Position numbers and translations under genes: made by a program
Shown: piece by piece, positions 28,201-49,000 of the stretch
Layout: each line of letters starts with the position of its first letter
Numbering within the stretch: position 1 is the first letter of the stretch
Assembly (NCBI RefSeq): GCF_006345805.1
Contig: NC_043011.1
Span: 66,724,464-66,788,463 of the forward strand
Direction: 5' to 3'
Source: Octopus sinensis
Lineage: Eukaryota
Length of the DNA: 64,000 nucleotides
Notes under the pieces: model-generated
Told to the model about the DNA's origin: nothing
Seen by the model: only the letters and a program-made list of their open reading frames with translations
Database searches by the model: none

Positions 28201-31200
28201 TATATATATATATATATATATTATTAAATTAGAGACAAAACCACTATTAGGCAAATCAAACAATGAAAAACTTAAGCCAACACATATGATTATTTAATTC
28301 GTATTATTTAAATATTGTTTAATTGTTTAATTTAATTGGTTCATTGTTAAAACCTCGCCAACATAAATATTTAAACCACCTGATGAATGACTGCGACTCA
28401 AAAATTTGGAGAAGTTAGCAAGCATGAAACGATCGTAGTGTGATATTAATTATATTTTTTTAATAATTTTGTTATATATTTAAATAATATAAATTAAATA
28501 ATCTTATGTATTGGCTTAAGTTTTTCATTGTTTGATTTGCCTAATAGTGGTTTTATCTCTAATTTAATATAATATAATATTTTACTATAAAATTGGATTC
28601 AATCCTAAATCTGATTTTTGCCTGTAAGTTTGGATTTATTCCCTAATATTTATTATTAATTATATATATATATATATATATATATATATATATATACATA
28701 TATATACAAATATATATACACATATAAATATATATAAATATATATACATTTATATATATACACATATACATATATATATATGATCTACCTTTGGTTTCAT
28801 ATTTATTCATATATATATATATATATATATATATATATATATATATATATATATATATATATATATATATTCTAGTTTCAGCTCAGAGCTGCGGCCATGC
28901 TGATGCACCGCCGTTTTGTGCCACACTGTTATTACGACGAATCTCGTCTAATGGCACTTGGTGAAGAATGGAGTTTGATATAGCTACTCTCATTTGCACC
29001 TCTTGCAAAAATAGACATATAAATATAACTATATTTACCTGCAGAATTTCCGAGTGTCTCCTAGAGGATCTACAAATGTGTCAGGACACTTACTTCTTCC
29101 AATCTCATTGCATTTCAGTTTATATGACACTGCACCTAAAATATATGAAGTTTCTCCTGAAAATATTAAATGATTATTCCCAAATTAATCTTTTTCTTAA
29201 AATACAAATCATTTTAGTTTGTTAGGTATTCGTATGATACAGATTATACATATAGTTGCTTCATATTCTGTTTTGTGTATTTTTGAGGGCGCTGAAGACG
29301 TTTCAATATAGTTATTGTCTTATGGTTATCAGCTGACATAAATACGCCACTTTACAGGAAACATGCTATATATCGAATGTCCTCGTTCATCACGTTTCTC
29401 ACTCCGATACATAATGGTGTTTGGAAATGGCCTCCATTTATTTACCGGGTTTATCATCGATAATATTTGGAGCACGTCGTATAAGTTGCGGAGTCCAATG
29501 GTTTGATTTCTACAGTTGAAATATTCCATTCAGAGTCTACCAACTCGTGTTGCTCATCTAATGCAGTTGCTCGTGCATCTGCGTGTTCACAGTTGGGACC
29601 TAAGCTTCTATGATATCATCTATTATACTTTAAATAAATCATATTTTGGATAAACCCTCAAGGGGTGTATTTTGACACCCTTGAATGAAACATTTCACAT
29701 AATAATTACTCGTCAAAATATATGTTTAGCATAATATTCTTTCTTTTTATTTGTCTAGAAAATGCTGTTTCGTTGGATTTTTCCCTTCGTAATACGACAG
29801 AATGAGGTCTCCGTTTTGCCTTTGCAACAATCTTGTTCCGTCAATTTGTCAGCATCAAAAAGACCTCGAAACAATTTCACAATACATTTTTAATAGCCCT
29901 GTTCAGGTACTTATCACAATCATGTTCCTTGGACGTGGTATAAGAAGTTTTATATTATGAACACAACTCATAAACCAAAATATTTTGATCACACATATCG
30001 TGTTATAATGTTCTCATGTAGAATATATGTAACGATTGCAAATGATAAAACGTGAAAGGGGATCTTTGTTGGAATTTTATTGATTAATATATCACTTTGC
30101 AAAAAAAGTACAAGGTCACTGTGTCCATTGTTGGCCCTCTAATTGATGAAAATGGCACCCTACAAGAGAATGTCGAAACCATGTGTGAGATACTGCAGAA
30201 ACAGTACTGCTCTGTTATCAGCAATCCCGATACGGCCGATATGACTGTGTCAGTGATGTTCATCCTTAACACACTATGACGGATATAAAGTTTGGTGGCC
30301 CTGATGTGTCAGCGGTAAAAAAACAAAATTAAACGCAATTCAGCAGTATGCCCTAATAGGTTCCCTGCTTGTGTCCTGAAGGTGGTTTGATACCAACGTG
30401 CATCTGCTCTTGCTAATCTGTGGAGGAACTCACTGGATGCTGGCTATATTTCTGAAAACTTTGTATCCCTGTGTGTTGTCCCGGTTTTCAAAAAGGGAAA
30501 CAGCTCCCTTGCAGTGAACCACCGTCCGTTATCACTTACCTCTCATATCATCAAATATATTTAGAGAGAGGCGAGATCACGAATAACCCACTTTCTTGAA
30601 AGCAACAGACCTTGTAAAACAACCAACATGGGTTGTGTAATTGAAGGAACTGCCTAACGCAGCTCCTGCATCACTTTGATGACATATTAAGCGCTTTTAG
30701 AGTGGGCTGCAACACTGATGTCATCTATCTTGATTTCAGCAACGAATTGTACAGAGGTGATCATAAAATTCTCGTGGAAGAACTCTCCAAAATCGGTGTC
30801 TCTGAAAAGTTACTACAATGGATCAAGTGTTTCCTGACAGACGGAACCCAACACATTGTTAGTCGAAGGAGTAAAATCAATGTTAATACCAGTAGCGGTG
30901 TTCCACAAGCCAGCGTTTTGGGCCCACTTATTCTCATCATCTACATCAATGACAATACTGACATCATCATGTACTACAACATATGACTTTTTGCAGATGA
31001 TTCCCAGATCCAGAAGGTCATCATTGAGGTGGGTAACCGGATATGTCATCAGTTTTCAGTCAGCGGGTGGAAATGAATAATAGGCTCCTGAAGGAAGACA
31101 AAATTCAGTTACTCAACGTCGGAAAAGTGGATACCCTGAAACTCCCAATCTTCAGGTGAAACACTCCTAGCATCCAACAAATAGGCTTGGCAGCACATAT

Positions 31201-46000: not shown

Positions 46001-49000
46001 ATTTTGGCCGCAACTGTATATCTATATGATATATATATATATATTATATATATAGTATTATATATATATATATATATATATATATATATATATATATATA
46101 TATATATGTATATGTATATGTGTATAAATATATATGTATGTATACATACATATATATATATATAGATATACATACATATATATATATACATATAAATATG
46201 TATACATATATATACATGTATATATATGGAGACACCGACACTACTCTCGGATCACAACATGGTAGAGCTGACCATGTACGGGCCAAATGAAAAGCATGGA
46301 CATGCAGCCTACAAGAAACTCTCAGAATCTTTCCAGCTTGAACTTCCATCAGGCAACTGGAAACAAATTGAGAAAGAGATCCTCAAACAAATCTGGCCTG
46401 AATGTCTCTCCTGCCAGACATCAATATGAAACTTCAACAATTCATGTATGTAATGCAAGCCATATGCTACAAATGTGTCCCAGACCGAAAGGCCACTGTA
46501 CACAAGAACAAAATCCACAGAAAGATGAAAATTTTAATGAGACGGCGTTCGAAAGTTTCAAATCGCCTAAACAAACAAATTGAAAGCAGTGAAAAGTCCC
46601 GCCTGAAAATAAAAAATGTTGCAATTCGAAAAATGTCTGCAACTCTCCATGAGAAAGAAAGAGCAGACAAAGAAGCCTGGGCTATAGACAACATAAAATC
46701 TAACCCCAGAGCTTTCTACATGTATGCCAAAGAAACAGCTACGGTGCACGGTAGGATAGGGCCACTCCCTGAAAAGGATGGCACACTCACAGAAAATCCA
46801 GTGAGGATAAGTGAAATACTAAATGAGCAATTCAAGAGTATTTTCACTCCACCCCTAGGGCATTTTCAAGTCAGCAATCAAACTAACTTCTTTACAACTG
46901 CAGATATAAAATCAGGGGTAGTGATGATTGATTACATCAATATAAAGGAAGACGATGTAATAAAGGCTATTGATGAAATTAAAACAAACTCAACTACTGG
47001 CCCCGATTGATTCCCAACAATCCTTCTAAAAGTATGTAAGAGAGTCCTAGCAAGACCACTGCAGTTCCTCTTTGAGATCTTCCTTGCAACAGGTAAACTT
47101 CCAAGAAAACTAAAGGAAGGTAAAATATGCCCTATTCATAAAGGAGGTAGCAGAGCGGAGGCCAAGAACTACAGACTAACTCTCTGACCTCACACATCAG
47201 CAAGGTCATGGAATGAATAGTCAGAAGGAAACTAATCACCTTCCTTGAAGAAAATGACTTGCTGCCTGACACCCAACATGGTTTCCGACCGGGAAGAAGC
47301 TGCTTAACTCAGCTCCTACAACACTATGACTGGGTGCTGAAACGACTGCTCAACCACTCAAATGTGGAAGTCATATATCTCGACTTTGCAAAGGCCTTTG
47401 ATAAAATCGGTCATGGAATGATATGTCACAAACTGCGTGATCTTGGCATAGTTGGAAAATTGGGAGAATGGCTTCATGACTTTCTGAAGGATAGAAGTCA
47501 AGTGGTAGTAGCCAATGTGGCCACTTCCATTAACACGCAAATTGTAAGCGGTTTTGGGACAACTACTGTTCATAATGGCCCTCTCAGACATGCCCTCAGC
47601 CACGTAGAGAGCCACGATCACAAGTTATGCAGATGATACAAAAGTTTGACAAGCAATACAGAACCCTGAGACACTAAGCACCTGCAATGTGAGCTGGACT
47701 AAATAGACAAGTGGGCTGAAAAGAATAGCATGCAATTCAATGCTGAAAAGTTTCAAGTTTATGCTATCAGCATGCAAAATTCAATGCAATACCCAATAAA
47801 TACACTGGACCTGGAGGGATTGCAATCCAGAGGCACAATTGGTGCAAGAACTGGGTATTTACATGAGTGATGATGCAAATTTGCATGTGCATGTTGCTAA
47901 ATTGTCAATGAAATGGAGGCGGCTGACCGGATGGATTCTTAGAAACTTTAGAACAAGAGACCAGGAAACCATGATGGTCCTCTGGAGGACACTTGTCCTA
48001 AGCCACTTTGACTATTGCTCTCAGCTATGGTCACAACCCAGTGTCAAGTTAATCACAGAACTTGAGGCGATCCAACGAAGCTACACGAAGAAGATAGCCT
48101 CTGTGCAGCATATAAGCTATTGGGAAGCTCAAGAGATTAAAACTCTATTCCTTAGAGTGTAGGCGAGAGAGTATTTGCCCATAATACACATCTGGAAGAT
48201 CCTAGAAGTACTTGTCCCAAACTTTGGCATAGAGATTCACACAAATGCCAGAATTGGGCGCCTTCATAGTGCCCCAGGACCCTCACGTTTGCCATCAAGA
48301 TGTAGGACAGGATACTGTGATAATCTGGGCTTCCGAGTCCCACCGCTCTTCAATATCCTCCCGAAGGACCAGAGACCTGCATGGGATGGATGCAGATGTC
48401 TTTAAAATAAAACTGGATCTCTTCGTGTCAGGTGTGCCAGATGATCTAACTTCACGGCGAGATATGCAGATGAGGGCAGCTGCATCGAACTCTCTCATGC
48501 ACCAAATGGCAATTGCTAAAAAGCATTCGTGAAGTAAAATCGTGTAGCAACACCAAATGGTGGTGCCCCAGCATGGGCATAGCTCGTGGGCTGAAACTAG
48601 ATAAAAATACTTTTGGTTCAGTATTAACTTGATATTATACATATCTATCTATCGATATATTATCTATATATATATATTATATATATATAATATATATAAT
48701 ATATATTATATATATATATATATTATATTATATAGATATATATATATATATATATATATATATATATACACGCTTATAAACATAACTATATTTACCTGCA
48801 GAATTCCTGAGGATCTCGTACAGGATCTAAAAAAATGTAAGCACAGAAGTGTCTTCCAACGAAATTGCATTCATGTCTATCTGACGCTGCACCTAAAATA
48901 TGTGAAGTTTTGTTTTGAAAATATTAAATGATTATTCCCAAAATAAGTTCCTCTTAAAATACAAATCATTTTAGTTTGTTAGGTATTCGTATGATACAGA

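Follow-up and report, generated by a model that had tools for sequence, protein, structure and literature searches.

How can two neighbouring genes share almost identical introns when a third of the nucleotides in the exons coding for their mature domain differ? The question is raised by a 64,000-nt stretch of Octopus sinensis DNA (hereafter the window; RefSeq assembly GCF_006345805.1, contig NC_043011.1, positions 66,724,464 to 66,788,463 of the forward strand), an AT-rich eukaryotic sequence with microsatellites and retrotransposon fragments. Comparison of the window with itself revealed five related units lying in tandem, head-to-tail, on the minus strand: the intact genes g1, g3 and g4, the disabled copy g2, and the solo first exon g5. 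A first-pass annotation of the locus had noticed that exon 2 of g3 and g4 is hypervariable beside near-identical introns, and had ascribed this to strong positive selection on a binding surface. We consider a two-part answer rather probable, namely that gene conversion homogenises the surroundings while diversifying selection acts on the domain exons of this octopus tandem family.

Results

Gene models

Alignment of the units resolved four short exons per gene, with canonical AG/GT boundaries and flanks conserved among the paralogues (Table 1). The spliced frames are open over 102-107 codons in g1, g3 and g4, and family members are about 105 residues long. In these three genes exon 1 (37 nt) codes for a signal peptide, exons 2 (97 nt) and 3 (88 nt) carry three cysteines each and together make up a six-cysteine domain of about 57 residues, and exon 4 codes for a Ser/Gly-rich linker and a hydrophobic tail. 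The 37/97/88/102-nt exon structure of g3 is also found in the O. bimaculoides RefSeq protein XP_052830203.1 (107 residues; its gene is called gene C below), which has the g3 exon 4 tail as well, and in the O. vulgaris protein model P0001 the peptide of g3 exon 2 recurs without change and that of exon 3 with a different boundary residue. As the same exons recur in the annotations of both species, they are therefore real exons, and by this sequence comparison the four-exon minus-strand genes are real too. The window is about 98% identical, with many small insertions and deletions (indels), to O. vulgaris OX597831.1 at about 19.03-19.06 Mb (GCA_951406725.2); this locus (L001) and an O. bimaculoides locus (L002) were used in the comparisons that follow.

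Domain exons outpace the neighbouring non-coding DNA

The counts that first drew attention to g3 and g4 were reproduced. Their second exons differ at 27 of 97 nt and 18 of 31 residues, codon 39 (GAC/GAT) being the sole purely synonymous difference and the three cysteine codons being unchanged, and their first exons differ by one synonymous base (ATT/ATA). The adjoining intron 1 (29136-30031 vs 48893-49779) differs at 23 of 884 aligned positions, plus 14 indels, and the contrast between exon 2 and this intron is not due to chance (Fisher p = 4e-16). The near-identity claimed for the flanks of exon 2 held on this side only; on the other side the genes align over just 21 nt before running into microsatellites. 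Moreover, the last 65 nt of intron 1 beside exon 2 are 12.5% divergent, compared with 1.8% in the remainder (p = 1e-4). A cleaner instance of the contrast is exon 3, which the first-pass annotation does not mention: 36 of its 88 positions differ (40.9%), and both flanks are alignable, with 13/70 and 23/196 differences, i.e. 12-19%.

The ten-fold contrast suggested by exon 2 and intron 1 (28% vs 2.6%) is inflated by gene conversion, and the true exon excess is about three-fold: the domain exons of g3 and g4 differ at 63 of 185 positions (34%), and the unconverted non-coding DNA at 50 of 470 (10.6%; p = 1e-11). The excess is not confined to this pair. Among the window paralogues, the domain exons exceeded their flanks by about 1.5- to 4.6-fold in every comparison with alignable flanks, exon 2 diverging by 19-46% and the adjoining intron by 5-24%, and exon 3 by 41-57% and its flanks by 12-33%. 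Comparison with gene C, the syntenic gene of O. bimaculoides, gave 28.9% for exon 2 and 12.2% for the flanking intron, 54.5% and 15.2% for exon 3, and 10.8% for the tail-coding exon 4 against 15-20% for its flanking intron. Hence, the two domain exons outpace the neighbouring non-coding DNA throughout the family, the excess being mostly non-synonymous in the closest pair, and the description of these genes as combining a conserved signal peptide, a fixed cysteine frame and hypervariable mature exons was confirmed.

Gene conversion in the surroundings of the domain exons

Outside the domain exons, the divergence between g3 and g4 is far from uniform. It amounts to 0.75% in a block upstream of the genes, 1.5% in the block around exon 1 and 1.8% over most of intron 1, compared with 8.6-11.7% in intron 3 (p = 2e-5 for the heterogeneity between introns 1 and 3); the end of intron 2 is 18.6% divergent and most of this intron is unalignable. 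The low-divergence tract stops within intron 1, about 65 nt short of exon 2.

Conversion was assessed by a triplet test, in which the O. vulgaris g3 orthologue served as the third sequence and the sites where the two g3 orthologues differ were scored. In the 3' block, the window g3 matched g1 at 34 of 37 such sites and the O. vulgaris copy did so at 3 (p = 1e-7); within this block, a tract of about 1.3 kb has no private differences in g1, 3 in g3 and about 23 in O. vulgaris g3. In intron 1, the window g3 matched g4 at 13 of 17 sites and the O. vulgaris copy at 4 (p = 0.049). Upstream, the counts were 10 and 0, about half of the 10 sites lying at the alignment edge. This asymmetry shows that gene conversion took place in one or other of the two lineages once their genomes had diverged. 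The exon 3 region displayed clean orthology and no conversion in a four-sequence comparison. An independent transposon insertion was rejected as the origin of the conserved intron block, because in every paralogue and in O. bimaculoides this block directly adjoins exon 2.

With recent gene conversion that spared the exon thus in evidence, a result that the first-pass annotation itself had named as one that would change its interpretation, the near-identity of the introns fails as a gauge of the age of the duplicates. More generally, intron identity between tandem paralogues is unfit as a neutral clock in tests of selection.

Selection on the domain codons

Codon-level tests were carried out pairwise on the 62 domain codons of g3 and g4, with a self-written fit of the Goldman-Yang codon model (GY94). 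The Nei-Gojobori method (NG86) gave a non-synonymous divergence (dN) of 0.53 and a synonymous divergence (dS) of 0.20, and maximum likelihood gave 0.54 and 0.14, respectively. The ratio dN/dS (omega) was 4.0 under GY94, and omega = 1 was rejected by a likelihood-ratio test (p = 0.015); omega estimates for the pair ranged from 2.6 to 4.0, with Fisher p values of 0.018-0.035. Only two purely synonymous codon differences were found over the whole domain, and 24% of third codon positions differ. A dN/dS significantly above 1 holds for the g3-g4 pair only. Diversifying selection on the domain exons is therefore likely, and the earlier claim of strong positive selection survives in part: dN exceeds dS between g3 and g4 and the domain exons exceed their flanks, but the ten-fold contrast does not stand, and omega between species is not significant.

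Age of the exon lineages

The domain exons of the window and of O. vulgaris differ at 2 of 273 nt, both differences being synonymous (g3 codon 39 and g4 codon 49), and the introns by 0.4-1.9%. From the site counts, we estimate the chance that both substitutions are synonymous under omega = 1 at about 4%. Judged by these two differences, the exons seem to have diversified long ago or in episodes, and to be under purifying selection now instead of still diversifying.

Three observations suggest that the lineages of the domain exons are older than the DNA around them. Between species, the dS of the domain exons (0.37-0.46) exceeds intron divergence (about 0.13-0.17). The orthology of gene C is mosaic, its exon 3 being nearer to g4 than to g3 and its tail exon nearer to g3 and g1. 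Finally, P0013, a family member from a mislabelled contig (see below), is 33% identical to g3 and 15-23% identical to g4 or to other members.

Weighing of the explanations

In the explanation that we favour, conversion or unequal exchange between neighbours would repeatedly homogenise the promoter, the signal exon, much of the introns, the tail exon and the 3' region, as the tracts described above demonstrate for these genes. The domain exons would stay outside the tracts and gain mostly amino-acid-changing differences, with the cysteine scaffold and a few residues of the core retained. The cause would be diversifying selection on the domain, which would also oppose its homogenisation; omega above 1 was demonstrated for g3 and g4, and the fact that the tracts repeatedly stop short of the domain exons yet cover exons 1 and 4 implies this opposition. 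The product would serve recognition or ligand binding, either at the cell surface or after shedding, and would be a relative of the N-terminal domain of repulsive guidance molecules (RGM), the copies displaying different helix surfaces on one common scaffold.

Several points weigh against this explanation. The selection test covers 62 codons of one close pair, with p of about 0.02, and omega between species is 1.0-1.8 and not significant. The excess of between-species dS over intron divergence means that part of the exon excess reflects older exon lineages, that is deeper coalescence, and not faster change. The lack of any replacement change relative to O. vulgaris speaks against ongoing rapid change, albeit with low power. 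Even the 10.6% "unconverted" background may have undergone some homogenisation, or splicing signals may constrain it, and a mis-assembled paralogue could mimic a conversion tract.

Some of these points would be accommodated if concerted evolution were acting alone, with conversion resetting the introns around old exons that are neutral or relaxed apart from their fixed cysteines. Such a course of events, without positive selection, is possible though rather unlikely. It agrees with the demonstrated conversion, with the between-species values of omega and dS, with the absence of replacement changes relative to O. vulgaris, and with the recent death of g2 in the window lineage, which fits weak constraint. 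It is at odds with the rejection of omega = 1 for g3 and g4 and with a dN that exceeds not only dS but also the divergence of every alignable intron segment. Nor would it make the tracts cover exons 1 and 4 and stop short of the domain exons, and the proteins are not in decay, given that all six cysteines and a number of core positions are invariant across the family.

Were g3 and g4 instead very young duplicates, intron identity would give their true age, and positive selection alone would have driven the domain divergence of about 34%. Some 63 substitutions in 185 nt would then have to fall within a sliver of time and be followed by none that changes an amino acid. This makes the account improbable, even though it would explain the high omega, the scarcity of purely synonymous differences and the nearly identical signal exon. 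Furthermore, the divergence of intron 1 between the paralogues (2.6%) is barely greater than that from the O. vulgaris orthologue (1.9%), and both genes are present in both genomes; divergence amounts to 9-19% in other non-coding blocks; the stretch of near-identity gives out 65 nt short of the exon; and conversion after the split is directly visible.

Exon-targeted mutation, as once proposed for conopeptide genes, would raise the rate of the domain exons irrespective of selection, in keeping with a between-species exon dS above the divergence of flanking introns and with the divergence of third positions between g3 and g4. We regard it as very improbable: the 2 differences in 273 nt between close genomes are not above the intron rate, the cysteine codons and the exon edges are untouched, and divergence already climbs over the final 65 nt of the intron, which a tract boundary would explain better. 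An artefact, either chance open segments in a repeat or an assembly error, is effectively refuted by the frame, phases and splice sites conserved in three paralogues, the annotated structure in O. bimaculoides and the exons in O. vulgaris, the six cysteines invariant in 26 domains and the confident fold prediction, despite the abundance of transposon fragments and microsatellites and although the searches turned up no protein annotated in the genome of the window itself.

Protein family, predicted fold and relation to RGM

A profile of the window proteins, searched against 1.84 billion representative sequences, found 15 relatives at E <= 0.001, the best at 4e-36. All are Octopus proteins bar one on the mislabelled contig, and many are encoded on one O. 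bimaculoides chromosome; the family includes O. bimaculoides LOC128249755/756/758/822/826/827/838/839/887 and O. vulgaris CAI9735841.1 and P0001. The exception, P0013 (WP_234446203.1), is an 82-residue partial member on a 322-nt contig labelled Campylobacter fetus, a label that almost certainly reflects contamination; P0013 has no intron, which suggests a cDNA origin. The family pattern of a signal peptide, C-x7-C-x(12-16)-C-x8-C-x(6-8)-C-x(11-12)-C and a hydrophobic C-terminal tail was found, and some relatives carry 3-8 tandem copies of the domain, with repeats in P0005, P0006 and P0011. The six cysteines are invariant over 26 domain sequences, and several core residues are invariant across the family. 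With these 26 sequences, AlphaFold2 predicted a three-helix bundle with a predicted local distance difference test score (pLDDT) of 90-95 for the domain; an earlier run with four sequences gave a pLDDT of 58 and was not used.

Four independent signals, each weak, indicate that the domain resembles, weakly but consistently, the RGM N-terminal domain. The Pfam family RGM_N (PF06535) matched the multi-domain P0005 with 37.9 bits, summed over four repeats, against a cut-off of 24.2 bits, and was the commonest weak Pfam match, occurring in 4 of 13 single-domain members. The window proteins scored 13.9-15.4 bits against RGM_N, below the cut-off, and had no Pfam match beyond it. In profile searches of the Protein Data Bank (PDB), the N-terminal domains of RGMA, RGMB and RGMC came top (E of about 0.02), and one of the two profiles matched nothing else; phmmer with P0005 found nothing in the PDB. 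The RGM N-terminal domains and the octopus matches share D-x2-[FY]C-x8-C-x7-C. The three best Foldseek matches were the RGMB N-terminal domain, at non-significant values (E 2.4, template modelling (TM) score 0.20-0.25); the query included the signal and tail helices, which probably lowered the TM-scores. Big defensin, Myticin, CX9C, NPR2 and other weak Pfam matches were dismissed, each occurring in a single member, as was the ectodomain of the calcitonin receptor from a PDB profile search, which was gone with the second profile.

The N-terminal domain of RGMB is a three-helix bundle with three disulphides that binds bone morphogenetic protein 2 (BMP2) and growth differentiation factor 5 (GDF5) (PMC7354924), and the predicted octopus model likewise has three helices and six cysteines. 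Features of glycosylphosphatidylinositol (GPI) anchor signals, namely small omega-site residues, a polar spacer and a terminal hydrophobic stretch, occur across the family and are clearest in P0003, P0010 and P0012. The proteins are thus probably GPI-anchored, and their GPI-signal-like tails would be a further likeness to RGMs, which are GPI-anchored. Unlike RGMs, the octopus proteins consist of the domain alone or of tandem repeats of it: the partial von Willebrand factor type D-like C-terminal domain of RGM, which undergoes autocatalytic cleavage and carries the neogenin-binding part, has no room in proteins of 102-107 residues.

Two points count against this part of the reading. Homology to RGM is marginal in the single-domain members (E of about 0.02-0.07, with the Foldseek values given above), and the GPI anchor is read from sequence features, the tails of g1, g3 and g4 being less hydrophobic than those of other members. 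A link to the RGM N-terminal fold is hence plausible but unproven. As a tentative and, on balance, doubtful extension, octopuses may have expanded a stand-alone, membrane-anchored RGM N-terminal (BMP/GDF-binding) domain into a large tandem family, whose helix surfaces were selected to be diverse and whose remainder was homogenised by conversion; this would be an undescribed, lineage-specific set of surface recognition proteins or ligand traps. If true, its members could be, for example, tuners of transforming growth factor beta (TGF-beta)-family signalling, or labels for self, gametes or neurons.

Comparison with known systems

The pattern itself is textbook, being familiar from venom peptides, defensins and genes of the major histocompatibility complex (MHC); the host family is new, unnamed and apparently restricted to Octopus, and our literature searches for an octopus description of a six-cysteine family of this kind found nothing relevant. 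Conotoxins and other cysteine-rich secreted peptides of molluscs (e.g. Mytilus MgCRP-I) resemble the cluster in their conserved signal, six-cysteine frame, hypervariable mature exons and intervening introns. Mature-peptide exons of conotoxins are reportedly about three times more divergent than the flanking non-coding DNA (PMC10561478), which matches the roughly three-fold excess in the octopus cluster. Unlike in conotoxins, the variable domain of the octopus proteins is split over two exons and is a helical bundle of about 57 residues, not a short knotted peptide; moreover, these proteins have no propeptide or dibasic cleavage site, and end in a hydrophobic tail resembling a GPI signal.

The octopus cluster resembles snake venom phospholipase A2 (PLA2) and three-finger toxin genes in two respects: coding exons have diverged more than introns, and dN is larger than dS between tandem copies. 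Unlike the beta-rich three-finger proteins, the octopus domain has a predicted all-helical fold, and much of the octopus intron conservation is demonstrably due to recent gene conversion. No Pfam, PDB or fold match to any toxin family was obtained. The cluster proteins are thus not recognisable toxins, and nothing links the family to venom, its members not being known to originate from venom or saliva.

At MHC loci, introns are homogenised by recombination or conversion, and the exons for the binding site are kept diverse by selection. The octopus cluster shares the recent coalescence of non-coding DNA and non-binding exons, the older diversified exons, the mosaic breakpoints in introns and an exon dS above intron divergence. 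Its copies are paralogues of a tandem array, unlike MHC alleles at one locus.

New in the present case are, first, the proteins, which are small and probably GPI-anchored and have a confidently predicted three-helix domain with three putative disulphides, perhaps derived from the RGM N-terminal domain. Second, opposing forces are seen side by side with boundaries defined to tens of bases, conversion acting on introns, signal and tail and the domain exons remaining diverse. If both the RGM link and the surface location are true, the family would be a candidate lineage-specific recognition system in cephalopods.

Other features of the cluster

The coordinates of the exons and tracts are listed in Table 1.

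Table 1. Exons, gene copies and homogenised tracts of the cluster (window positions).
Feature	Position	Strand	Remarks
g1 exon 1	10172-10208	minus	signal peptide MKHFIVFVFLIS
g1 exon 2a	4998-5088	minus	91 nt; three Cys; in frame
g1 exon 2b	4665-4761	minus	97 nt; tandem duplicate of exon 2; Tyr for first Cys
g1 exon 3	3664-3751	minus	88 nt
g1 exon 4	2777-2878	minus	identical to g3 exon 4
g2, freshly disabled copy	14357-20980	minus	exon 1 20944-20980, exon 2 16087-16183, exon 3 14886-14972, exon 4 14357-14458
g3 exon 1	33730-33766	minus	37 nt; start codon and 12-residue signal peptide; phase-1 donor GTAAGT
g3 exon 2	29039-29135	minus	97 nt; first domain half, Cys1-3, 31 residues; identical peptide in P0001
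g3 exon 3	26915-27002	minus	88 nt; second domain half, Cys4-6
g3 exon 4	26407-26508	minus	102 nt including stop; Ser/Gly linker and hydrophobic tail, read as GPI-anchor signal; identical to g1 exon 4
g3 alternative terminal coding exon	24599-24718	minus	used by O. vulgaris P0001; g1 copy 967-1086
g4 exon 1	53762-53798	minus	signal peptide; one synonymous difference from g3
g4 exon 2	48796-48892	minus	97 nt, 31 residues
g4 exon 3	43043-43130	minus	88 nt
g4 exon 4	42478-42564	minus	87 nt including stop; tail ANAAGSVGISKTFLLPLSIQYITITKLL
g5, solo exon-1-like copy	62535-62571	minus	MKYSMIIFFLIS; weak donor
Homogenised tract, g3 intron 1	29201-30031	minus	g4 partner ~48958-49779; 15/820 = 1.8% divergence; stops ~65 nt short of exon 2
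g3 exon 1 and promoter blocks	33677-35219 (33677-33942, 34557-35219)	minus	98.5% and 99.25% identity to g4 53708-53974 and 54157-54820
g3 3' block (intron 3 end, exon 4, alternative exon)	23873-26637	minus	97.9% identity to g1 220-3007

With the peptide of exons 1 and 2 alone as the query, database searches gave no matches, and a full-length g3 search gave a single one, P0001. The P0001 model was not adopted, since its N-terminal part runs past the exon 2 acceptor and draws on an exon further upstream that is probably spurious; the O. bimaculoides RefSeq annotation supports the four-exon model. The first exon of P0001 (46 residues) lies at 36505-36642 of the window, upstream of the g3 signal exon, and is probably a mis-prediction; the signal exon itself is unused by P0001. 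A scan of the whole window for cysteine-rich open segments was uninformative owing to CA/TG microsatellites.

Exons 2a and 2b of g1 differ at 17 of 91 nt and their adjoining introns at 8 of 148, the exon differences lying mostly at both ends around an identical central block. The two copies may be spliced in a mutually exclusive manner; alternatively, 2b may be dead.

In the window, g2 carries AAG for the start codon ATG and AT for the exon 3 acceptor AG, and its last cysteine codon is removed by a 1-nt deletion. At the O. vulgaris locus, which is about 98% identical to the window, all three sites are intact, and this contrast is a third novelty of the cluster; in O. bimaculoides the counterpart of g2 is the annotated gene P0003. 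Either the gene died very recently or the window assembly is in error at these sites.

The alternative terminal exon of g3 and g1 swaps the GPI-signal-like tail for another hydrophobic tail (…AIMSFINIAISYVFKKFIAVGISVII), and several isoforms of differing length per gene are present in the O. bimaculoides RefSeq annotation. In the RefSeq model of gene C, the first exon lies 12.7 kb upstream and is spliced to exons 2-4 (L002 10001-10037 vs 22782-24311). This distal first exon adjoins family gene B, and nearer exon-1-like copies lie at about 17.7 and 20.2 kb of the locus. Solo exon-1 copies thus occur both in O. bimaculoides and in the window (g5); downstream of g5, no copy of exon 2 or exon 4 turned up in the window. 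From this arrangement, it is possible that first exons are shared, or used alternatively, across the cluster.

Intron 1 of the window g3 lacks, at 30028-30031, about 440 nt that are present in O. vulgaris g3 (L001 16190-16630); the stretch also occurs in the window g4 (~49780-50312) and g1 (~5566-6109 and ~7196-7607). Retrotransposon fragments resembling reverse transcriptase lie in intron 1 of g3 (~30100-31800) and g4 (50313-50976), and an insertion of about 370 nt resembling a short interspersed nuclear element (SINE) lies in intron 3 of g1 (~3050-3420) but in none of the other paralogues. Upstream of both g3 (39249-41815) and g4 (55820-58436) lies a repeat of about 2.6 kb, 95% identical between the two, with a partial inverted copy near g5 (60522-61254; 96%); this repeat is a transposon or else belongs to the duplication unit.

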